DNA from: Macrostomum lignano
Lineage: Eukaryota
DNA: 64,000 bases
Direction: 5' to 3'
Assembly (NCBI GenBank): GCA_002269645.1
Contig: NIVC01001255.1
Coordinates: 1-64,000, forward strand
The first letter of the stretch is position 1. Every line of letters starts with the position of its first letter. Shown piece by piece: positions 1 to 54,133 of this stretch. The translations under genes and the position numbers were made by a program. The notes under the pieces are model-generated. The model was not told the DNA's origin. It did not search any database and saw only the letters and a list, made by a program, of their open reading frames with translations.

Positions 1-720
1 TGATCACAGAGTATGTCTCACATGATTACAGAGAATGTCTCGCATGATCACAGAGTATGTCTCACATGATCACAGAGCATGTCTCGCATGATCACAGAGC
101 ATGTCTCACATGATCACAGAGCATGTCTCACATGATCACAGAGCATGTCTCGCATGATCACAGAGCATGTCTCACATGATCACAGAGCATGTCTCACATG
201 ATCACAGGAGCATGTCTCGCATGATCACAGAGCATGTCTCACATGATCACAGAGCATGTCTCACATGATCACAGAGCATGTCTCGCATGATCACAGAGCA
301 TGTCTCACATGATCACAGAGCATGTCTCACATGATTACAGAGCATGTCTCGCATGATCACAGAGCATGTCTCGCATGATCACAGAGCATGTCTCACATGA
401 TCACAGAGCATGTCTCACATGATCACAGAGCATGTCTCACATGATTACAGAGCATGTCTCGCATGATCACAGAGCATGTCTCACATGATCACAGAGCATG
501 TCTCACATGATCACAGAGCATGTCTTACATGATCACAGAGCATGTCTCACATGATCACAGAGCATGTCTCACATGATCACAGAGCATGTCTCACATGATC
601 ACAGAGCATGTCTCACATGATCACAGAGCATGTCTCACATGATCACAGAGCATGTCTCACATGATCACAGAGAATGTCTCACATGATCATAGAGAATGTC
701 TCACATGATCACAGAGAATG
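1..720. repeat. 22-bp minisatellite (GCATGTCTCACATGATCACAGA)n, about 32 copies, runs off the left edge
   Basis: Period-22 tandem array read directly, with few substitutions. Confidence 0.97.
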
Positions 721-1058
721 TATCACGTGAACCCATCCGCTCTTAGTTTGATCATTGCAGTATACTCTTGTTATACGTTTCTCGTAGTATTTTTTTGCAA
801 AATTGTTTCTTTCCAGACTGTAATCGTCAGACAGACACTGCAGAGCCATGCAACAGATGGTTGGAGATGTGTTGAATGTTTAACTATTTTAGCCATCGCT
901 AAAAAGGTAAATTATTTGGATTTCAATGCAATTCAATTGTTTAGTAAAACCTGAAAATTGCAAGTAGATCGCATAACCTATGCAATGCATTGCAGAGCCA
1001 TATTTTGCATATGCTGTCCGATTTCACGGTCGATGAAAACATTTTTTACTTTTTACAG

Positions 1059-1147
1059 GTGCAAAAAGCAGTGAGTCAAGCAGATCGGCCGGAGCTGGGC
1101 CGCGGGCGCCATCCCGGTGGGCTGCGCAGGGCAACTCCGTAGCCTGA
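1059..1147 (+). CDS. Possible terminal exon of a gene lying left of the window
   Basis: Polypyrimidine acceptor TTTTTACAG ends 1058; GC-rich block stops at 1140-1142 or 1145-1147 depending on phase; AATAAA at 1155-1160. Product unknown. Confidence 0.3.
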
Positions 1148-2200
1148 TCTAAAAAATAAAAAGGCCATCCTGAGAAAGCTGAAATAGAAAAAAGAAGTGA
1201 TTACCTATGTTCTCCGCATCTGGAATTATTGTTAACGTTTTCTTTAAAGTTTAGTAGAATTCTTCTTAAATCTGGTTTCAAGCCTAACGGCTTTTTAAAA
1301 ATAAGAAAGTTTGAATAGCAAAAAACCTAAAATAACGAGGACATAGACGCGGTTAATCCATGGGTGTTTATAAAACTAAAAAACGTATTTTAAGCATCTC
1401 AGAGGCTGTCTTTTTACAGTAGGTTACGTAATGCAACCTCTAAAACGAGGTTGTTGACGATGACATGATAATTTTGAGCCTTATCTTTATTTTGCCACTG
1501 TTATTCAGTTTCTAAAGCTATTCATTGTATCAGTGACGGGATATGCTCGAATAATCCGATACGGATTTTCGATTGAAGATGTCTAACTTTTCAGATACGG
1601 TCATATGATTAATCTTGCGATACAAAATGCATAAATTGTCAAATTGAATTCCACGTTCGAATGAGGTTCTGTATAATTAGGTTTTAAATGTACATTTTGC
1701 TCGCACGCTGGGATAGATTTTCCTAAGGTAGCGTGTCATTGATAAAAATATTTTCTTGCGGTTTTAAGTTATTTTTGTCGGTGTTTTCACTTAGGCACCC
1801 ACAGTTGTTAATAGAAACAGTAATCCTATTTTTGGACTTGCGAATATCTCTAGAATAACCAAAAAAATCGAAAGATAGATCTGTCGATTTTTCTGTCGAT
1901 TTTAAATTTTAAATTTTAAAATTTTAATTTTCTGTCGATGTTTAAACTTGTTGATTTTACGAGCTACTTGCAATGAGCGCTTAAATTCTATATTTAGACT
2001 TTCTGTTCAATTGTCAAAAAATTAACTGCACATGCCCAAGAAATTTCATACTCGTATTTCAACTTTTGCATCAAATTTTAATGCTGCAACGATTCTGTTC
2101 CTTTCAGCAGTAAAACCTCGGAACTGAGGCTTAGCGATTCTTTAAGCAAAATATTTTGGTTATTTCATCTTGCGCTGCAAAAAGCGGTTATTTCATCTCA

Positions 2201-2967
2201 ATGGGCAGCTCAAGCAGCCAGCTGAAGCGTTCCAGTTCGATGTCTTCACGTCACAAATCCCGAACGTCAGTTTCTAGAACGTCATCATTGAATAATCGGC
2301 AGATGTCACTCACGTCCGCTGCAAGACCTGCACAAGCAGCCGCGTCTCGTCGGCCGCCTCCAAACGCCTGTTGGTCCGGCGACGCTCTCGACTCTTTGCC
2401 GAAACAAAAAGTCGCAGCTACGACACCGGAATTACGTCATGTGATCGAAGAATTTCGGTCTAACTGGACTCTATTCAACGCTAATATGCTAGAAGACCCC
2501 AATTCGGCTGGCAAACTTCTCCGGCCGCGCCTTGTCAAGAAGATGGAGCCAAGGCTTTTGGATTTGCCTCATGCAGATGCCAGACGATGGAAGCACGTAA
2601 AAGCCAATCTAAATAGACTTCGCTCGAATGTCACGTCCGAGGATATTGAGCTTGCCATATATTCCTTTGGCAATCTAGACCACTTTCACCGACCAAAGTT
2701 GGATGTGCTGCATCATTTACTTAATAACCATTGGCCTCGGGAGAAAGTAGAAAGATTCTACCGGGATATTCTACCTGGAATGATACGTCTGGCACTCTCT
2801 CTGCCGGACCTTTTACCTGAGCAGATTCCGTTGTTAAGCCGCGGTCGACAAGCTGGTTGTCGTCCGTTGAGCTTCACTCAGCAGCAAGTTGCCAGTCTGC
2901 TCACTCACGCTTTTTTTTGCACTTTTGTCTTCCAAGGCGGTCAATATCCAAGTATCAATTTCAATGG
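2201..2967 (+). CDS. PARG: PARG exon 1 (N-terminal disordered region and start of the PARG accessory domain)
   Basis: ATG 2201 (MGSSSSQ); FYRDILPGMIRLALSLP, FTQQQVASLLTHAFFCTF and YPSINFN match PARG-family motifs; donor GG|GTATGA at 2968. Confidence 0.9.
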
Positions 2968-3049
2968 GTATGATTTTTAATTTCTTTTCTTATGTGATTA
3001 ATTTTACTGTTTAATTATCAAGTCTTTAATATCACCTATTAAATTTAAG

Positions 3050-3144
3050 AATATTTGTGTCTGGCGAATATCAAAGGCCGTGCACTCGTCGGATTGAGAA
3101 GCTGAAGTGCATCCTGCACTACATGGATCGCGTTGTTACTGACG
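3050..3144 (+). CDS. PARG: PARG exon 2
   Basis: Acceptor TTTAAG|A; phase-consistent translation GIFVSGEYQRPCTRRIEKLKCILHYMDRVVTD matches the PARG EKLKCxxHYF motif; donor G|GTATGC at 3145. Confidence 0.88.
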
Positions 3145-3231
3145 GTATGCATTGATCCGCAGTATACCGTATAAAGGTCGTCTTATGCCATGGGTTTAGT
3201 TGACGAATGTACGTGTAAAATAGCTGTTTAA

Positions 3232-3822
3232 CAGTAGGAATACCAAGCCATTTTTCCGCCCGTCGAACTACCAAGAGGGGGGGGGATCCCCCCCTGACAA
3301 TTTTTTTGCTGCGCAGGAACGGAGCAACGCAGGCACACGAAATTCAAGAACACGGGCTGACTTTTTGTTGTGCACCTTCTCAAACAAGAATCAAGTCGCC
3401 AGTCCTCCGGACCGTCGAAATATTCGACGATTCTGCCAGAAAGTCTGATTTTTCCCATAAGCGCTAGTGTATTCAGTACACCCCTGTGCGCCAATTAGCA
3501 CTGCGCCTCAGTGCAGCCTTGCCAAGTCTCCAAATTTCATCAGCACGTCGACCACATGTGTCTGCATCAGCTCTGACTTCGTTGGTCACTAGCCTTCACC
3601 CAGGTGGAGCTTCTGGACCCTCAACAGCTGTGGCACCAGGTGACTATGGACACCCTGATGCGGATTTCTCTAGTTTCGCCGATCAAGCCTCGACAGTGGG
3701 CAAGAATCAACCGTCAGACATTCTCAGCTAGTCTCTCAAGCATTCCGTCATCATCCCGACGCCGTCGGCAAAAAATTGTCAGGGGGGGAATTTCCCCCCC
3801 GCCCCTCTTGGTAGTTCTACTG
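3232..3822. mobile_element. Non-autonomous TIR DNA transposon (MITE) in PARG intron 2
   Basis: Ends CAGTAG...CTACTG; subterminal inverted repeats GAACTACCAAGAGGGG..CCCCCCCTGACAATTTTT; flanked by TTAA at 3228-3231 and 3823-3826; internal part recurs at about 15785-16077. Confidence 0.8.
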
Positions 3823-4057
3823 TTAATGAGAAATGGGGGTGTCGTTGTTACTAGCTATTTAAATTGTTAACAAATACAATAAGCTAAGACGCAAAAGTAC
3901 AGACAAGAAGAAAAATTGTCGGTAGGGAAGTGCCGCGCGAGTGTGTCTATCTAGAACCTCTATAGGAGGATAGGACCTACATGTATAAAGCTACGAGTGT
4001 AAGCACGATATTTCATTGTTTTTTTTACAACTCCAATACTTAATATCGCATTTTCAG

Positions 4058-5091
4058 CACCGCTAGGAGTGATCACAATCAGCCGGAAATGCCTTCGACA
4101 CGGAGTTAATTGGTCGGAGAGAACTGAGCCGATGCCTGACCGATTGCACGTTTCGTCCACTGGGACAATTGAAGACACAGGTGGTGGCTTCTTGGAGGTT
4201 GATTTTGCAAACAAATTTCTTGGCGGAGGAGCTCTTGGACACGGATTGATGCAGCAGGAGATCAGATTTATGATTAGTCCTGAGCTAATAGTGACTAGAC
4301 TAGTTACCGAGTGCCTCGATGACAATGAAGCCCTACTAATTGAGGGGTTCGAGAGATTCAGCGACTACTCGGGCTATGCAGACTCTTTCAGGTGGATCGG
4401 CGATCACAAAGATTCACGACCGGTTGGTTTGGACAGACGGCGTTCATCGCACCTGGTTGCCATGGATGCGGTGTGTTTCCGAAGCTGGATTGAGCAGTTC
4501 AGTGTCTATAACATTGAACGAGAGCTCCACAAAGCTTTGGTAGCGTTCGGCGATGTAAAAGACAATAAGAGCGGTGCGCAGCAACATGGCGCAGTTGCCA
4601 CTGGCAACTGGGGTTGTGGCGCGTTCAAGGGTGATGTCAGGCTGAAATTTCTCATCCAGTTGATGGCATGCTCACTCGCCGGGCGGCCTGTGGCGTACTT
4701 CACGTTCGGTGATCAGCTGCTCCAAAAGCGCCTCGTGGAGATGCATCAGTTCCTCATAAATAATAATGTTACAGTGGGTGGCGTCTACAACGCTCTGATT
4801 GCCTACGCAGATGAACTAACACTAACTGTAAGGTCCCATCATACTCGACGCCAAGAAATGACTGCCCAGTCTGCGCCAGACTTGTTTCAATTTGTGATCT
4901 ATTACGTCCAATCAACGCGCGGTCCTTCTTTTTACGATCCAGCTGCGAATTCCAATGTTCCAATGCTGTCGACCAATGGGAAGCATCCAGAACGCATAGC
5001 GAAAACTGGTCAAAGTGGTGAGCGACAGAATTGGCAAAAGTCAGCAAAGATGTCAGGACAGTGGATACCAGAGCAAGTTCAGCACACATGA
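4058..5091 (+). CDS. PARG: PARG exon 3: catalytic macrodomain-like region, to the first in-frame stop
   Basis: Acceptor TTTTCAG|CA in phase with exon 2; motifs EVDFANKFLGGG..QQEIRF, GFERFSDYSGYADSF, AMDA, ERELHKA, ATGNWGCGAFKGD, KFLIQLMACS. Confidence 0.93.
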
Positions 5092-5793
5092 TGCCACCAG
5101 CTGGACAAAGCGGTGAGCATCAGAATCGGCAACAGCCAACGGAGATTTCAGGACAGCAGACTGACCCGAGAGCGAACGTCGGGACACATGGTGCACCAGC
5201 TGGACAAAGCGTTAGACAACACAATCAGAAAAATAAGAAGGCTAGTAAGTCAAATGGGAAGAAGAGAGGCAATGCAGAGAGTCAATCTGAAGCATCTGTT
5301 GGCTGTTTCGGCAAATCTAAACAAACAAATGTTCGTCGTAGTGTTTCTCCAAAAAAACCTGGAAAAGGTAATTGCTTAGTTGATTTTTGCATTTATTTTT
5401 ATGGATTAATTTAGTTATCAATGTGATCAATTCTCATTTTTAGCCATCTTTGCCTAAAATATAGATTTTAGCGCTCAGTTAAAGAAGTTTTCTGTACCAT
5501 TCAAGAATCTCTTCTCTGTATTGGTTTTTTCCGTCTGTTACCATGTTGATATGGCAAAAACTGTTTTTGCATTAAACTAAAGTATTTTCACACCCAGTTA
5601 AAGAAAAATTTGCTGCCTAAGACACAGAGTTTTTTACGAGCTAACTGCTGTAACAATTGGTCTGTTCAGAAAGAAAAAAATAATGCTCTGCTTTGAGTGC
5701 TCAAGAACGCTAAAAACTATATTAACTCAAGTACAGGTGAACTCAAAGCTCATATATAAATCTAAACATAATCTTAACATTTATGTTTTTTAG

Positions 5794-5960
5794 ATCGGCC
5801 GTCGTCGATTCGAGAATCGGGTAGATCAAATCCAAGCGATCGAAGATCAACAGAGGGGGAAAATGCCAATCTGGTTTCAAGTAATACGAATTCTGCAGCC
5901 AGGAGAAGAAGGCGTAAGGTTGAAGCAAATAAGAACTCTGCTTATGTTACAGATGTGTAG
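5794..5960 (+). CDS. PARG: Probable PARG last exon, reachable only in the frame shifted at about 5062
   Basis: Donor AAAG|GTAATT at 5368 (phase 1) joins acceptor TTTTTAG|AT in an open frame DRPSSIRES...RRRRRKVEANKNSAYVTDV*. Confidence 0.6.
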
Positions 5961-6895
5961 TCTTCACTCGAGTTATTAAATGTTATTAATTCAAATTATT
6001 AAATGTGATTTTACAAACTGAACACAAAGACCAACAGTAACTTTTTCAGGAACAAACGTGCAGAGTTGTTTGTTTTTTATTCAATTTGAAAGACGAATCG
6101 ATTCTGTAAGTTCAACTTTTCGATAGTTTATGCCAAAAAAGATATATAATTTCTCTTGCCGTTTTGGCGGAATTGTTTTCAACTTTGCTCAACTTTTTGC
6201 TGTCTTAATATATCCAAGCTGTTTTATTGAGTCACGGAGTTTTAAGTAAATGATCTGGGTGGAAACTGACGCTTATGAAGTTTAAATTCTAATAAAGAGA
6301 GAGTAAAAACTATCTGACGATAAGATTTACAAAATTCAGGTGCTCCGGGCTCAGCGGTGTGGTCATGCTTGAGTACCTTATTGCTGGCTATAACACTCAC
6401 ACCGTAAAAAAACTAATTAAAAAATAACAAAAAATAACATGTGACATCTGTGATCCTTTTCATCAGTTTCGGGACTGCCATTTACTTGTCGCTTACAGAC
6501 AGACCGATTGTGCCCCGCTATTAATTTTACTGATGCCGCTGTTCAGATGCTGGATGCCGGCCATAAAGTATTCCAACTCGTTTATCCCGATGTGATTTTT
6601 CTTTTGGAAGGCCTAATTTTTTTAAGTTCTTAGCCAATTTGCTAATGCAGATTTTTGTATAACATTTTCTTGCTTCAACGACCAATTTTGATAAGTTCTC
6701 TTATTACCAAGTTATACATGTAAAAAATCTTTGAGACATTCCTTTTGTTTTTTTAAAGTGCTTTCGTGTTAATTGTAAAAAGTTGTAACTAAAATAACCC
6801 TACTTTTTTAAGATAAAAATTTATCTGTTTTTCTACCAAGCATTTTGTGACTCGTCTTCTTCAATTTCAAAAACATGAAATTCAAGAAAAACAAT

Positions 6896-7325
6896 GATGT
6901 CTCACATGATCACAAAAGATGTCTCACATGATCACAAAATATGTCTCGCATGATCACAAAGTATGTCTCACATGATCACAAAGGATGTCTCACATGATCA
7001 CAAAAGATGTCTCACATGATCACAAAATATGTCTCACATGATCACAAAATATGTCTCGCATGATACAAAAGATGTCTCACATGATCACAAAATATGTCTC
7101 ACATGATCACAAAGTATGTCTCACATGATCACAAAAGATTCTCACATGATTACAAAAGATGTCTCACATGATCACAAAGTATGTCCCACAATGTCACAAA
7201 AGATGTCTCACATGATCACAAAAGATGTCTCACATGATCACAAAAGATGTCTCACATGATCACAAAAGATGTCTCACATGATCACAAAAGATGTCTCACA
7301 TGACACAGAGAATTTCTCACATGAT
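6896..7325. repeat. 22-bp minisatellite (ATGTCTCACATGATCACAAAAG)n, same family as 1-720
   Basis: Period 22; shares the ATGTCTCACATGATCACA core with the left array, same orientation. Confidence 0.95.
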
Positions 7326-7551
7326 CTGTCTGACATGAACCCAGACGATGTTTCATAGATCCCTTAGGACGTTTCACGTGTACCCAGAGAATTTCTTTTA
7401 TGATTCAAAAGAATGTCTCTCTTAGAGCTCTTTGGCCTGTTCAAATTGTATTGCAAGTGTATTTGTTCAGAAATTTGAGGTTTCTTTACCCCATCTTTCA
7501 GTTCAGCCTAAAGGCAATCTACCTCAGTCTCCAGGGCTCTCGCAGACAAAG

Positions 7552-8109
7552 ATGACGGGCAAACGGCAGCAGCCCGACCCGTTTGACTATCCGTCTTCTC
7601 TAGCATTCGGCATTATTGTTGGCTACGCGTTGGCTCTACTATTCGCGGTAATCATTGCTGCAATTCGACGCAAAAACTGCTGCAAAATTGTCGGTCCTAG
7701 CAGCGACAACTACCACTTGGTCCGCTTGGAGAGAACCGAGGTGGAACCGCTAACCTCGACGCCCGGTCGTGAAGTAGAGAGCAACACTGACTCACCAACC
7801 AGAGTTGCTAACATCGCTGTCGCCCAGACAACAGAGCCTACGGTCGCGAATGCAGATATTGTCACGGTAGAACTCGCACTCACTGGGTCAGAAACGGAGC
7901 GAGAAACTACAGCGGCAGCTGAGCCTGACGAAGTTGAAACAGAAGATGAAGTTAAAAGGCTGCGTCGCCTGACGGAGCAGCTGGACGCCATTTTGGACGA
8001 GTTCAACGCTGATGAGACAGACGACCGAATAGTGCTCGAACTCGCGCAGGAGATCGTGTCTACAGCTATACGTCAAGCTGTTGAAATTTGTCACGCCGAA
8101 AGCAATTAG
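7552..8109 (+). CDS. Single-pass membrane protein (185 aa) with a C-terminal AKAP-like amphipathic helix
   Basis: ATG 7552 inside ORF 7432-8109; TM LAFGIIVGYALALLFAVIIAAI followed by basic RRK; acidic Thr/Glu-rich linker; IVLELAQEIVSTAIRQAV near the C-terminus. Confidence 0.7.
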   Translation: MTGKRQQPDPFDYPSSLAFGIIVGYALALLFAVIIAAIRRKNCCKIVGPSSDNYHLVRLERTEVEPLTSTPGREVESNTDSPTRVANIAVAQTTEPTVANADIVTVELALTGSETERETTAAAEPDEVETEDEVKRLRRLTEQLDAILDEFNADETDDRIVLELAQEIVSTAIRQAVEICHAESN

Positions 8110-8329
8110 TTTTTTTTCTACGCAAGTACAATGGGAAGTGGTGCTCAATTTTGGATTTTTTTGTTTTGATTTTGACTTCTGTGTCAAAGCGACTGCACGG
8201 CGCTATGTACTGCTAGTCTCTTTAACAGTTGCAGAGCCTGGCCATCTTTCTGTACTTTTTTATGCCAGAAATAGTGTTTTATTAATTTTGTTATTAATGT
8301 TACAAAGGACTCGCATTCAAAGTGTCGAA

Positions 8330-8955
8330 TGACTGTCAGGGCCAATTGACTGTCGGTGACAATTGTCTGTCAGTGCCAACTGACTGTCAGTGCCAATTGA
8401 CCGTCAGTGCCAATTGACTGTCAGTGCCAATTGACTGTCAGTGCCAATAGACTCAGTGACATTTGACCGTCAGTGCCAATTGACTGTCGTTGACAATTGT
8501 CTGTCAGTGCCAATTAACTGCCAGTGCCAATTGACTGTCGGTGACAATTGACTGTCAGTGCCAATTGACTGTCAGTGTCAATTAACTGTCAGTGCCAATT
8601 GACTGTCAGTGCCAATTGACTCAGTGACATTTGTCTGTCAGTGCCAATAGACTCAGTGACATTTGACCGTCAGTGCCAATTAACTGTCAGTGCCAATTGA
8701 CTGTCAGTGCCAATTGACTGCCAGTGCCAATTTACTGTCAGTGCCAATTAACTGTCAGTGCCAATTGACTGTCAGTGAAATTTGACTGTCAGTGCCAATT
8801 GACTGCCAGTGCCAATTTACTGTCAGTGCCAATTAACTGTCAGTGCCAATTGACTGTCAGTGCCAATTGACTGTCAGTGCCAATTGACTGTCAGTGCCAA
8901 TTGACTGTCAGTGAAATTTGACTGTCAGTGCCATTTTACTTCTAGTGACAATTGT
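8330..8955. repeat. 17-bp minisatellite (TTGACTGTCAGTGCCAA)n
   Basis: Period-17 tandem array. Confidence 0.95.
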
Positions 8956-9537: not shown

Positions 9538-10143
9538 AGACCATCTGACTAAAATCCCATAAGACCATCTGACTAAAATCCCATAGGACCATCTGACTAA
9601 AATCCCATAGGACCATCTGACTAAAATCCCATAGGACCATCTGACTAAAATCCCATAAGACCATCTGACTAAAATCCCATAGGACCATCTGACTAAAATC
9701 CCATAGGACCATCTGACTAAACTCCCATAGGATTATCGAACTAAAATCCCATAGGACCATCTGACTAAAATCCCATAGGACCATCTGACTAAAATCCCAT
9801 AGGACCATCTGACTAAAATCCCATAGGACCATCTGACTAAAATCCCATAGGACCATCTGACTAAACTCCCATAGGACCATCTGACTAAAATCCCATAGGA
9901 CCATCTGACTAAAATCCCAAAGGACCATCGAACTAAAATCCCATAGGACCATCTAACTAAAATCCCATAGGACCATCGGACTAAAATCCCATAGGACCAT
10001 CTGACTAAAATCCCATAGGACCATCTGACTAAAATCCCATAGGACCATCTGACTAAAATCCCATATGACCATCTGACTAAAATCCCATAGGACCATCGGA
10101 CTAAAATCCTATATGACCATCTGACTAAAATCCCATAGGGCCG
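9538..10143. repeat. 24-bp minisatellite (GGACCATCTGACTAAAATCCCATA)n
   Basis: Period-24 array; explains the repetitive ORFs 9452-9952 and 9733-10182. Confidence 0.96.
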
Positions 10144-15784: not shown

Positions 15785-16077
15785 CCCCCTCCCTGACCAT
15801 TTTTTGCTGCGCCGGACTTTTTGTTGCGCACCTTCTCAAACAAGAATCAAGTCGCCAGCCCTCCGGACCGTCGAGATATTCAACGATTCAGCCAGAAGGT
15901 CGGATTTTTCCCATAAGCGCTACTGTATTTAGTGCATCTCCTGTGCGCCAATCAGCACTGCGCCTCAGTGCAGCCTTGCCAAGTCTCCAAATTCCATTAG
16001 CACGTCGACCACATGTGTCTGCATCAGCTCTGACTTCGTTGGTCACTGGCCTTCACCCCGACGGAGCTTCTGGATCT
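15785..16077 (+). mobile_element. Truncated second copy of the element at 3232-3822, in Uncx intron 1
   Basis: Collinear, highly similar to about 3290-3620 (shared CACCTTCTCAAACAAGAATCAAGTCGCCAG and CAGCTCTGACTTCGTTGGTCACT). Confidence 0.85.
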
Positions 16078-50530: not shown

Positions 50531-53500
50531 CTTGCTGGCGACAGTTGCTGCTGCTGTCGATGAGAGCCGGAGCTAGCAGCGAAGACATCGTCCTCGTCCC
50601 CGCCGCTGGACAGCTTTGCCAGGCGAGTCTGCACCCGAGCTAGCGTGTCGTGCCGCTCCGCCCCGTCCAGCAGGTCGTCGTCCTGCAGCTGCATTTGCCG
50701 GCAGAGGTCTTCGATCTCGCTGACCGGATCGCCTGCGGTTGCTCCGCGGGGACTCAGCAAGGATTCCCGCTTGTTGCGGCGAAGGCTGGCTGCCCCAGTT
50801 GGAAGGACTTTCACCGCGTTGGAAGGCAGCTTCAACGCTGCGCGGTGACGCTCGTTGATTGGGTCATCGGAGTCGTCCGTGTCGGAACCGCCGATGCGGC
50901 CGTTTCCGTTGCTACGCCGCCGGTGCCAGTCAAGCCGCTCTTCCAGTTGCTTCATCAAGTCCCGCGACTGCGGATGCAACTGGTTTCGCTGCTGCTGGTG
51001 ATGCTGCTCCTGAAGTTCGGTCTGGCGCTGTGCAGAGTGCTGATTTGATTGCTCCTTGTACTTGTAAGTCTGCTTCGGCTGGTACTGATAGCGTTGCCCG
51101 TGGTGCGAATTGCTCTGATTGCTCGGCTGCTGGGTATTTGGTTGAGTTTCAATGCGATGCTGATGGTTAGGATTTTGATACTGCTGCTGAAGCTGCTCAT
51201 TTTGATGCTGGCGTGGATGCTGGTGCTGATGCTGGTGCCGAGTTGGAGAATGGTACGGCTGTGACTGCGGCTGAAGAACTCCGATTGATAATCTTGCTGT
51301 GGCAGTCTGAGCAGCACTCGGGCCAACGCTAGAGTTGTCGGGAGCCCCCGGCATGTGAGTCTGAATCTGCGTGCGCGTTCGCGGAGTCGATGCGGCGGAT
51401 TTCGTCTCGTTTGCTCGCTGGATTTGATGTCGCAGACACAGGAGAGCCTCCTGAAGTTACCAACGCTGCAGCGGCTGCGGCTGGCACCTCCATTGGCCGC
51501 TGACGATACGTCGGCTGCTGCTGCGACTGTTGAATGGACGACAAACTATTCGATCGCTGTCGACTGAGTGATGATTCGGCGACCGCTGCCGGCTGTTGTT
51601 GACCTCGGTTTCCGCGCGATATTGGGCGATGCTTGCCCGACGACCAGAGCTGGTTCTGCTGGTCCTGCTTTCGCGGCCGCTGAGGCTGCTGGTGGTGGTG
51701 GTAATTGTGCAGATGGTAATGCTGCTGATGAACTGGCGGCGGTGGTGGTGGCGGTTGCGGCGGTGGTGGTGGCGGTGGCGGCGGCGGCGGCTGCGGCGGC
51801 GGCTGCGGCGCTGGAGGAGGTGGCATGAATTGCTCCTTCCTCTGGATGGGCACCACTGCAGGCGCTGGGGAAACCTGGATCTGCTTGTATAAATGGTCAG
51901 CAGAGGCCGCCTCACCTGCACTGCGCCGCTGCCTTCGTGGAGGCACTGGAGGTACCGGTGACGTTAACTGCGGTGGCTGCTGCGGCGGTGGCTCCTGCCT
52001 CTGATACTGAAGATTGACTTGCGCAGCGTAGCGATCAGTGCTAGGTCGATACCTATAGGCATCAGTGAGGGTCTCGCTGCCTTTCGGGTAGAGGTCGCTA
52101 GTCCGAATGGATGTCGGCAGCGAAGAGCTCTGGCTGTTTGCCGCTGTTGAGTCGCGCTGCTGCTGGTTCTGATAATGCTGGTGCTGCTTGTGCTGGTGCT
52201 CGCGCTGATCTGGCTTCTGCCGCCGAGGCTGATGGTTTGAATCTTGATATCGGTGCTGGTACTGCTGCCCGCGTTTCGGCTGGTGCTGGTGATGATTCTG
52301 GTGCCATCTGTCGTCACCAACGAGGCCGTCTACCGCTTCAAACACAGCGTCGTCATCGTCATCGTCGTCCGCTTCGTCAGCGCTGACGCTGACTAAACGC
52401 GCGGTGGCCGTTGCCATGGCTGCAGAGTATTCCGGCGCAGGCGGAGGTAACGGGCGCTTCTTTCTTTGCCGAGAAGAGCGCTTCCTGTGCGGCAGGTATT
52501 TGTACACGTCCTCGCCTTGCTGATGCAGCTGCTCCTGCGGCGGCCTTTGAGTCTGATAACCGTTGCTACCGCCAACTGTAAGCGGACTGTTTGAGTAAGT
52601 AAAAAGTTGGCGCAGCTGCTCTTCAACTTGCGACTTTGGCTGCTGCTGCTGCTGCTGCTGCTCTGCCTCCCTTTCTGGTCTGCTTTTTCGCCGCTGTGGC
52701 CATAGTTCATTATTTTCGCTTGAGTGTGCGGCTGCACCCAATTGTACTCTGGCAGAGCTGAGGTGTACACCAGCATGGGCCGAGCTCTGCTCCGCGGGAG
52801 AGCCAACACCCCACTCCGCAGCCACCTCGAGCCCCCACTGAGCGTCAGTCAACGGTCCTTGCTCACCCGTTGCGCGAGTGGGTCTCTGGCGCTCCGGCGG
52901 AGGTGGGTGGGGCAGCTTTCTGCGCCTCGCCGCCGGCTCCTCCTCCAACTCCTCCACCTCCACCTGCGGCCCTCGCTCCGCTACCGCAGGCTGTCGCCAG
53001 TTAAGCGACATTTGCACATGCAATCGAGTCGCATTCGCATCTTGCTTTTCCATTTCAGCTGCAGTTGCAGGTGCCTTATGTTCTGTGAGCACTGGCGGAA
53101 GCGGCTCGGGTTCCAGATCCGGCTCCGGTTTTGGTTCAGATTCCAGTTCCACGTCCGGCTTCATCTCTGAGCGACTGCCGCCTGAGCTTTGCGATCGCCG
53201 GCGCGGCCTCAGCGGATCTCGCGGCGGCCCGCGCAGCCGCTCGAGACTCGACAGTTTGCCGCTGGGTTGCTGCAGCTGCGCCACGGGCAGGAAGGCCTCA
53301 GAGTCGGCCTGTGCTGCCCACGAGCCGTGCCGGTCCACGGGCGCGGCCGAGGAGGAGCGCGATCTCGATGGCGATGACGACGCGCGACTGCGGTGCCGGC
53401 TCCGACGTCGCGGCGTCGACTCACCGGAAGACACGGCGGTTCGAGAGCGCGAGTCGATGACTTTGATCTTGCGTATCCGGCTAAAACGACTGGGAGCGCC

Positions 53501-54133
53501 GGTCGTGGCGGCGGCAGCACAGCGGCTGACATCAGCGGCGTTGTCTTTGCCGTCGTCGGCATCGCTGTTACCGGTGCTGGCGCCACCGCCGCAGCCAACA
53601 TCGACAAGCGCATTCGGTTGCAGCTTGTCTTGAATCTGGCGCCCAATGTCGCTGAGCTGCTGCAGGTAGCGCCGCTGATCCTCCTGGCGATTTTCGCGCT
53701 CCAGGGTGTCGCCAAGGCTCGAGCTCAGCTCGGCGGCGTCCGGATCGTCGCTGTCTGCCGGCAGGTTGCCGCGGTATATCGCGTCGAGCTGGGAGGAGGC
53801 CACGCTGCTGGCTGACGGGCTGTGAGGTCGGCTACTGCTGGCCCCAGAGGCAGCCTCGTGATGGCTGACTGCCGTCATGCTGACGTGCCGGGAGCCTCTG
53901 CGAATAAATGGAGCGGATGGTTTGGCGGCACTTTGAGACGAAGAGAAGACGCTCGAAAGCTTTCGAGCTTGGAATTGCTCAGCGCCAGTGCACACAGGCC
54001 TGAACTTCGAACGGGACCAGAGTACAATAATGGCGATATGAGTGCAGTGAACTTCAATAGCTCGCTTTTCTTTCAACCTTCTGACCCCCCGCCGTTGCGG
54101 TTCTGCCAGAAAGCACTTTGGAAGCGTGCGCAA
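50531..54133 (-). CDS. Giant exon of a disordered Pro/Gln/His/Ser-rich protein, split by a 1-nt frameshift at 51345-51349
   Basis: ORFs 51329-54133 (934 aa) and 50488-51354 (288 aa) have the same composition and join if one base of a G5 run is removed; donor GCAAG|GTACAG at 50531; true start unresolved. Confidence 0.72.

Follow-up and report, generated by a model that had tools for sequence, protein, structure and literature searches.

Glutamine replaces the first signature glutamate in a tandemly duplicated PARG gene of the flatworm Macrostomum lignano

Introduction

PARG removes poly-ADP-ribose (PAR) from proteins and is usually encoded by a single, essential gene in which natural variants of the catalytic signature are rare. 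Here we describe a PARG gene, C1, of Macrostomum lignano, a flatworm known for regeneration and radiation tolerance, that departs from this signature. The gene lies in the first 64 kb of contig NIVC01001255.1 (assembly GCA_002269645.1), a stretch referred to throughout as the window, and its catalytic loop reads QQE in the place of QEE. The locus raises the question of what becomes of a PARG whose first signature glutamate is exchanged for glutamine: whether it still acts as an enzyme, has taken on another role or is being lost. The answer that we favour is a weakened, ligand-binding duplicate sheltered by canonical neighbours.

Gene structure and domain organization

C1 is composed of three exons on the forward strand (2201-2967, 3050-3144 and 4058-5091) that are separated by canonical GT-AG introns. 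The joined coding sequence gives a 631-residue product, 100% identical to the M. lignano protein PAA70250.1 in GenBank. Exon 1 runs from Met1 to the first two bases of Gly256, with the donor GTATGA just 3', and encodes a low-complexity N-terminus followed by the PARG helical accessory domain. Exon 2 (IFVSGEYQRPCTRRIEKLKCILHYMDRVVTD) is bounded by AG and GT, and is identical across all five copies of the B/C type described below. Exon 3 encodes the catalytic core of PARG, which has the macrodomain fold, and the beginning of the tail, with the annotated stop codon at 5089-5091.

Both domains of the family are recognized by Pfam. The helical accessory domain (PARG_cat_N, PF20811; E = 7e-18) is N-terminal to the catalytic macrodomain (PARG_cat_C, PF05028; E = 2.1e-77), in which 204 of the 207 profile positions are matched. 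Human PARG crystal-structure chains align to C1 at 1e-93, with the QQE of C1 opposite the QEE of the human enzyme. A preliminary description of the locus had assigned a PARG catalytic domain to it, and these matches bear the assignment out. An AlphaFold model of the C1 protein, built from a 60-sequence alignment, has a pTM of 0.80 and reaches TM-scores of 0.86-0.89, normalised to the target, when superimposed on the human and mouse enzymes; within the limits of a predicted structure, the agreement of the C1 fold with solved PARGs is confirmed. Judged from its sequence, the gene is a signature-variant PARG paralogue: every testable defining feature of canonical eukaryotic PARG is present except the first signature glutamate.

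The catalytic loop

The signature loop, GGG-X7-QQE-IRF, extends from Gly343 to Phe358 in exon 3 (4222-4269, forward strand, as are all residues located below). Direct translation gives GGGALGHGLMQQEIRF, with the QQE codons at 4252-4260, exactly as the preliminary description had read them. The glycine triplet (residues 343-345), the seven residues that follow and Gln353 keep the triplet and the spacing of the canonical GGG-X6-8-QEE signature. Gln354 (codon CAG, 4255-4257; ancestral codon GAA) aligns with the first glutamate of QEE in the human and mouse PARG structures and stands in the place of human E755 and mouse E748. The second signature glutamate is retained as Glu355 (GAG, 4258-4260), an invariant column that corresponds to human E756, the proposed catalytic acid/base (PMC3519477). 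Two residues upstream, Met352 (ATG, 4249-4251; ancestral codon GTG) takes the place of a valine (human V753). The preliminary description was right about Gln354 and about the presence of the other catalytic elements, but in calling the remaining motifs intact it missed this second substitution (GTG to ATG).

For an estimate of how unusual the two residues are, 119 nearest homologues were aligned with the flatworm copies, and the columns that are at least 90% conserved were compared. The column of the first glutamate holds Glu in 119/119 homologues, and the column of residue 352 holds Val in 119/119. V352 and E354 are the only family positions at this level of conservation that are altered in C alone, C standing here for C1 and its counterpart C2 on another contig. 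When 1.84 billion representatives of 50%-identity clusters were scanned in full with HMMER, 845 proteins had E <= 1e-30; among the best 150 of these 845, the first glutamate is Glu in 143/143 representatives that cover the motif (128 by pattern match, 15 by local alignment). No Gln was thus found at this position in 262 other PARG sequences (119 + 143), no search aimed at other QQE PARGs having been made. Another natural signature variant was seen in the distant representative P0217, which reads VQEDVLF, with Asp replacing the second, catalytic glutamate (QED).

The remaining active-site elements are retained, and most active-site columns are invariant in the alignment designated A1. The segment Asp336-Phe-Ala-Asn339 (4201-4212; human D737 and N740) includes the invariant D336 and N339, which is at least 90% conserved. 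Tyr394 (4375-4377) is invariant and corresponds to human Y795 and to mouse Y788 at the tip of a beta-hairpin, from which its role is taken (PMC3897571). The diphosphate-binding loop G-N-W-G-C-G-A-F-K-G-D-V (4603-4638) contains seven invariant residues (G470, N471, W472, G473, C474, G475 and G479), and both its GxGAF stretch (G473-C-G-A-F477) and the YFTFGD motif (Y501-F-T-F504) are kept in C1. Outside the catalytic core, several residues conserved in the helical domain are absent from B and C together.

The same loop at a second locus

On contig NIVC01000420.1 (locus L002), three PARG genes with the same three-exon structure stand in tandem as A-B-C2. Copy A (signature loop GGGVLGHGFVQEEIRF) shares 61% protein identity with the window gene in the catalytic exon, copy B (loop GGGALGHGLVQEEIRF) shares 86-91%, and C2 shares 96-98% together with the loop of C1, GGGALGHGLMQQEIRF. 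The window from 388 to 8903 is 97.9% identical in nucleotide sequence to the C2 region.

The codons ATG CAG CAG GAG are common to C1 and C2. The two lie on separately assembled contigs with 20 differences at other coding sites, which makes a sequencing error a very unlikely source of QQE. In addition, the loop difference between B and C consists of three substitutions with no indels, and about 6% of exon 3 positions differ between C and B, which marks C as a distinct gene and not a miscalled B. Single-base indel discrepancies do occur close by (5067-5094), but an origin of the QQE reading in assembly or sequencing error has, in our judgement, a negligible chance of being correct.

An alignment with paralogues and homologues, a step suggested in the preliminary description, leaves Gln354 of C alone against the glutamate of the homologues and of A, B and two further copies, B' and BC3. 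These four paralogues read GTG CAG GAA GAG, whereas C1 and C2 read ATG CAG CAG GAG. Since A, B and the B-like copy of the third locus keep GTG CAG GAA, the loop change of the C copy is, on the evidence of these codons, derived and later than the B/C duplication. By the same reading, E354Q needed two base changes (GAA to CAG), and not the single G>C change that had been proposed at first, and a third change gave V352M.

Organization and history of the PARG arrays

The first 730 bp of the window are a tandem array of 33 copies of a 22-bp unit (TGATCACAGAGCATGTCTCACA), detected by tandem repeat finder and situated between B' and C1. Contig NIVC01001254.1 (L007) has A' and B', both with QEE, at its end, and its final 55 bp match window 1-55, inside this array, without a difference. 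Because the overlap is exact, the two contigs can be joined as A'-B'-C1, which places C1 as the third gene of a second A-B-C array that the assembler broke at the 22-bp repeat. At a third locus, on contig NIVC01003597.1, A'' is accompanied by only one B-like gene, BC3 (QEE), directly after which comes the 201-residue gene described below, and no C copy is present. The composition of the arrays is accordingly A-B-C at two loci and A-BC3 at the third. C1 has the look of the youngest gene of its array, the other genes of which retain QEE.

B (NIVC01000420.1 and NIVC01001254.1) and BC3 resemble C in exon structure, in their place within an array and in protein sequence (86-91% identity), and differ from it in keeping GTG CAG GAA (VQE) and in lacking an insert in intron 2. 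A canonical multi-exon M. lignano PARG, likewise QEE, adjoins a cysteine synthase gene at three other loci. The neighbour-joining tree has the form ((((C1,C2),B),A), canonical M. lignano PARG) and is nested among animal PARGs, a placement which argues that the PARG array is a lineage-specific expansion. The long N-terminal array of a 24-residue repeat (ETAKPGPDSAECAGSSSNEKVGEP; L002 1-1580) that characterizes paralogue A is not found in B and C.

Among the three array loci, A and the downstream gene differ by about 1%, whereas B and C differ by 5-7%. For this reason the B/C duplication is, by its sequence divergence, older than the split of the loci, and the QQE change is probably older too. 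A recent whole-genome duplication has been reported in M. lignano (PMC5704211, PMC10733133), and the split of the array loci is consistent with it.

The relationships within the arrays are not those of a simple tree. Exon 3 does not differ between B and B'. In its catalytic half, B and BC3 are separated by 0 non-synonymous and 4 synonymous differences (dS 0.02), and C is separated from both by a dS of about 0.15; in exon 1, B, C and BC3 form a three-way split with a dS of about 0.065. The 3' tail and flank of C1 (window 5079-6118) are 97.5% identical to paralogue B (L002 8569-9614), compared with about 92% in the catalytic exon, which points to gene conversion or to a younger 3' end of the duplication unit. 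Gene conversion or unequal crossing-over evidently took place among the copies, and their history is reticulate. A single tree, or a branch-specific dN/dS with BC3 as the closer outgroup, was set aside in view of this mosaic history. Paralogue A is saturated at synonymous sites, and polarises amino-acid changes only.

Database proteins for the array are unreliable, because the deposited models are chimeric or fused. The 807-residue GenBank entry PAA83400.1 (L002 6001-16076) is a chimera of exon 1 of B with exon 3 and the tail of C2 that skips about 6 kb, and in the UniRef models A0A1I8H247 and A0A1I8G9J8, A and B are run together with the 201-residue gene further downstream. For a fusion model of the WormBase type, P0133, no gene with exactly that product is on record.

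Comparison with characterized PARGs

The role of the exchanged residue is known from mammalian enzymes. In human PARG, the distal ribose contacts E756 through its 1''-hydroxyl, E755 through its 2''-hydroxyl and N740 through its 3''-hydroxyl (PMC3519477). E756 is the acid/base, while E755 takes a hydrogen bond from the 2''-OH, is held by D737 and possibly takes part in a proton relay (PMC3519477). The bovine equivalent of E755N abolishes catalysis and leaves the binding of an ADP-HPD derivative unharmed, whereas E755A loses both catalysis and affinity (PMC3519477). Mouse E748N is dead owing to a distortion of the loop; E748Q keeps the wild-type active-site conformation and has residual activity only (PMC3897571; PDB 4N9Y). 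Human E755A does not degrade PAR, yet removes ADP-ribose from RNA at reduced efficiency (PMC11920425).

The mouse E748Q mutant (Wang et al. 2014, PMC3897571) carries the same substitution as C1 at the same position of the same fold, and 4N9Y is the best PDB sequence match to the C1 segment (GLVQQEIRF against GLMQQEIRF). The two differ in that 4N9Y derives from a vertebrate enzyme mutated in the laboratory, shares about 45% overall identity with C1 and keeps the neighbouring Val, whereas the substitution in C1 is natural and occurs in a duplicated gene. The preliminary description had suggested an impaired enzyme that perhaps still binds its ligand; by analogy, the published mutagenesis of mouse E748Q and of the E755N equivalent agrees with this suggestion. 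Its further proposal, a PAR-binding pseudo-enzyme that protects or reads chains, is speculation.

Canonical metazoan PARGs (human PDB 4B1H and others; Drosophila 8ADJ) have both Pfam domains and the fold in common with C1, together with the GGG triplet, the Gln and the second Glu of the signature, the diphosphate loop, the Tyr and the YFTFGD motif. C1 differs from them in the exchange of the first Glu for Gln and of the preceding Val for Met, and in an unrelated N-terminal regulatory region.

The closest natural precedent of C is PARG2 of Arabidopsis thaliana (GGL-X7-QEE), which, like C, is a lineage-specific duplicate with a natural signature polymorphism beside a canonical PARG (PMC4287526). 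AtPARG2 has no detectable glycohydrolase activity, and the gene is retained as a tandem neighbour of the active PARG1; restoration of its motif fails to rescue activity, and new functions in plant immune responses have been proposed for it (PMC4287526). The precedent is imperfect. AtPARG2 alters the third Gly and C the first Glu, and AtPARG2 is only about 52% identical to AtPARG1 and has other inactivating differences, whereas C is about 90% identical to B and its loop changes are its only specific departures at conserved positions. Partly degenerate signatures have also been noted in the bacterial-type PARGs of eukaryotes (PMC4245714). In the literature, no report was found of a natural Gln at the first Glu of PARG or of a M. 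lignano PARG array, M. lignano and PARG being mentioned together only incidentally, and nothing was found on the locus tags Mlig006718, Mlig006438 and Mlig023323.

Selective constraint on the C copy

Over 625 codons, C and B differ by 49-54 non-synonymous and 37-40 synonymous changes, which corresponds to a dN/dS of 0.36-0.43 (p about 6e-6 against neutrality); in the catalytic core the ratio is about 0.3. Replacements polarised by paralogue A number 7 on the B branch and 8 on the C branch. No indel between B and C breaks the frame, and in C1 as in C2 codons 1-625 can be read through without stops or frameshifts, with GT-AG at each of the two introns and no broken splice site. This pattern argues that C has been constrained about as much as B for most of its lifetime.

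Other features of the window

Intron 2 measures 303 bp in B and 913 bp in C. In C1 and C2, and not in B, this intron contains an inserted element of about 600 bp (3228-3826) that ends in terminal inverted repeats and was identified from these repeats and from the comparison of copies. The insert is MITE-like (resembling miniature inverted-repeat transposable elements), with terminal inverted repeats of 20-30 nt rich in runs of G and C, and a partial copy of it (260 bp, 93% identical) lies at 15815-16074.

Downstream of the PARG array, a gene for a 201-residue protein (7504-8109) is 99.8% identical at the three loci and has no Pfam match. Judged from the translation, its product seems to contain a hydrophobic segment that probably spans the membrane. 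Three more tandem arrays, whose periods are 22, 17 and 24 bp, lie at 6896-7326, 8330-8954 and 9539-10139, and the 24-bp array gives long artefactual repeat reading frames on the minus strand (MVLWDFSQ...). An open reading frame of 934 residues on the minus strand (51329-54133) has no Pfam match. A Pfam scan of five open reading frames of the window other than PARG returned none.

Discussion

By analogy with the mammalian enzymes, we consider it probable that C is a hypomorphic, ADP-ribose-binding PARG paralogue whose canonical neighbours make it redundant. Following the duplication that gave B and C, the C copy gained Val352Met and Glu354Gln in the catalytic loop and kept the other elements needed to bind ADP-ribose, namely GGG, Asp336/Asn339, Glu355, Tyr394, the G-x-G-A-F loop and YFTFGD. 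If mammalian mutagenesis is a guide, the first glutamate would accept a hydrogen bond from the 2''-OH of the distal ribose and help to set the proton relay to the second. Glutamine has the same shape, so that the pocket and the binding of ligand would be expected to survive, and PAR turnover to drop to a small fraction. Bulk PAR degradation would fall to A and B, the canonical neighbours, and to the separate PARG of the ancestral type, a redundancy that would have let the E354Q change persist.

Several observations weigh against this interpretation. The only comparison that covers the period after the change is that of C1 with C2, and here 13 non-synonymous and 7 synonymous differences give a dN/dS of 0.56 (p = 0.16 against neutrality), so that the dN/dS analysis advocated in the preliminary description indicates constraint for C against B and does not extend it to the two C copies. 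In exon 1, C1 and C2 differ by 11 non-synonymous and 2 synonymous changes, and their divergence in exon 3 (0.7%) is not below that of intron 2 (0.33%) or of the downstream flank (0.83%). Relative to C2, whose frame is unshifted, C1 has three single-base indels, at 5067, 5078 and 5094 (forward strand), with a net -1 frameshift that leads to the stop at 5089-5091 and cuts off a Lys/Arg-rich C-terminal tail. The tail coding sequence persists in a frame other than that of the upstream coding sequence (5070-5366, forward strand; 93% identical to the tail of PAA83400.1 by tblastn), and the last tail exon, DRPSSIRES...AYVTDV (5793-5957, forward strand), is intact and 100% identical to the C2 model by tblastn, although unreachable from the annotated C1 frame. 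The frameshift either marks the onset of decay in C1 or reflects an error in the long-read consensus. The C copy is missing at the third locus, and is dispensable at least there. No transcript evidence for C was found, in a read-derived protein collection that also lacks the canonical M. lignano PARG and is therefore uninformative; the exact C1 protein is on record from the genome assembly only. Gene conversion blurs the assignment of changes to branches (B equals B' in the catalytic exon, and B is close to BC3). Finally, V352M has no characterized counterpart, and its effect could either worsen or compensate that of Gln354.

Much of this would be expected if C were a redundant duplicate in early decay, in which the loss of the glutamate was neutral, its work being done by A, B and the canonical PARG, and which has no function of its own. 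The C1/C2 ratio is indistinguishable from 1 and exon 1 is rich in replacements, coding divergence is not below that of nearby non-coding DNA, the tail of C1 is frameshifted and the third locus is without C. To these points can be added the transposon-like insert in intron 2 of C only and the lack of separate transcript-based evidence in what was found, one GenBank model being a B/C chimera. We nevertheless regard decay as unlikely, albeit the foremost of the alternatives. Both copies can be read through for 625 codons and have canonical splice sites, all the indels that separate C from B preserve the frame, the ratio of C to B indicates constraint, and polarised replacements are not clearly more numerous in C than in B. 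Beyond 352 and 354, no position that is at least 90% conserved is altered in C alone; the catalytic half of exon 3 shows 2 non-synonymous and 5 synonymous differences between C1 and C2; and the three indels, all within 28 bp, may have arisen as errors of the long-read consensus.

A somewhat less likely possibility is that C is selectively maintained in a new role, as a reader of PAR or ADP-ribose, a shield, a substrate trap, a slow eraser or a hydrolase of shifted substrate range, such as ADP-ribosylated RNA or DNA ends. Both C-specific changes at conserved positions fall in the catalytic loop and leave the binding elements untouched, and the open reading frame is maintained. The known mutants lend this some plausibility, given that human E755A has no PAR hydrolysis and keeps a reduced ability to de-cap ADP-ribosylated RNA (PMC11920425) and that the E755N equivalent still binds ADP-HPD (PMC3519477), as does the inactive tandem paralogue Arabidopsis PARG2 with its proposed immune functions (PMC4287526). 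Against it, the C1/C2 comparison gives no sign of positive selection, nor of constraint after the change; C is missing at one locus and truncated at another; and the change is very young and known from one species only. By our estimate, three substitutions in 9 bp are unremarkable at 6% divergence, since exon 3 would be expected to hold about two windows of this kind, and no significant clustering of the loop substitutions is claimed.

It is improbable that C is a normally active enzyme in which Gln354 performs nearly as the wild-type residue, perhaps through compensation by the paired Met352, since glutamate occupies the first position in all 262 other sequences, which argues against the equivalence of Gln, and Ala, Asn and Gln substitutions of this residue all strongly reduce PAR hydrolysis, even though mouse E748Q retains residual activity and Gln could still hydrogen-bond the 2''-OH.

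The sister genes B (QEE) and C (QQE), side by side and about 90% identical, constitute a natural experiment, in which the natural substitution of C is exactly the laboratory substitution made in mouse PARG. A comparison of the B and C proteins would reveal the contribution of the first glutamate in a native background, and would show if duplication can turn erasers of ADP-ribosylation into readers, an idea already put forward for Arabidopsis PARG2. If C is merely drifting, it would capture a PARG of a neopolyploid genome at the outset of pseudogenisation and would be of local interest only. If instead C has a new role, M. lignano would possess a neofunctionalised PARG that arose from an expanding gene array.

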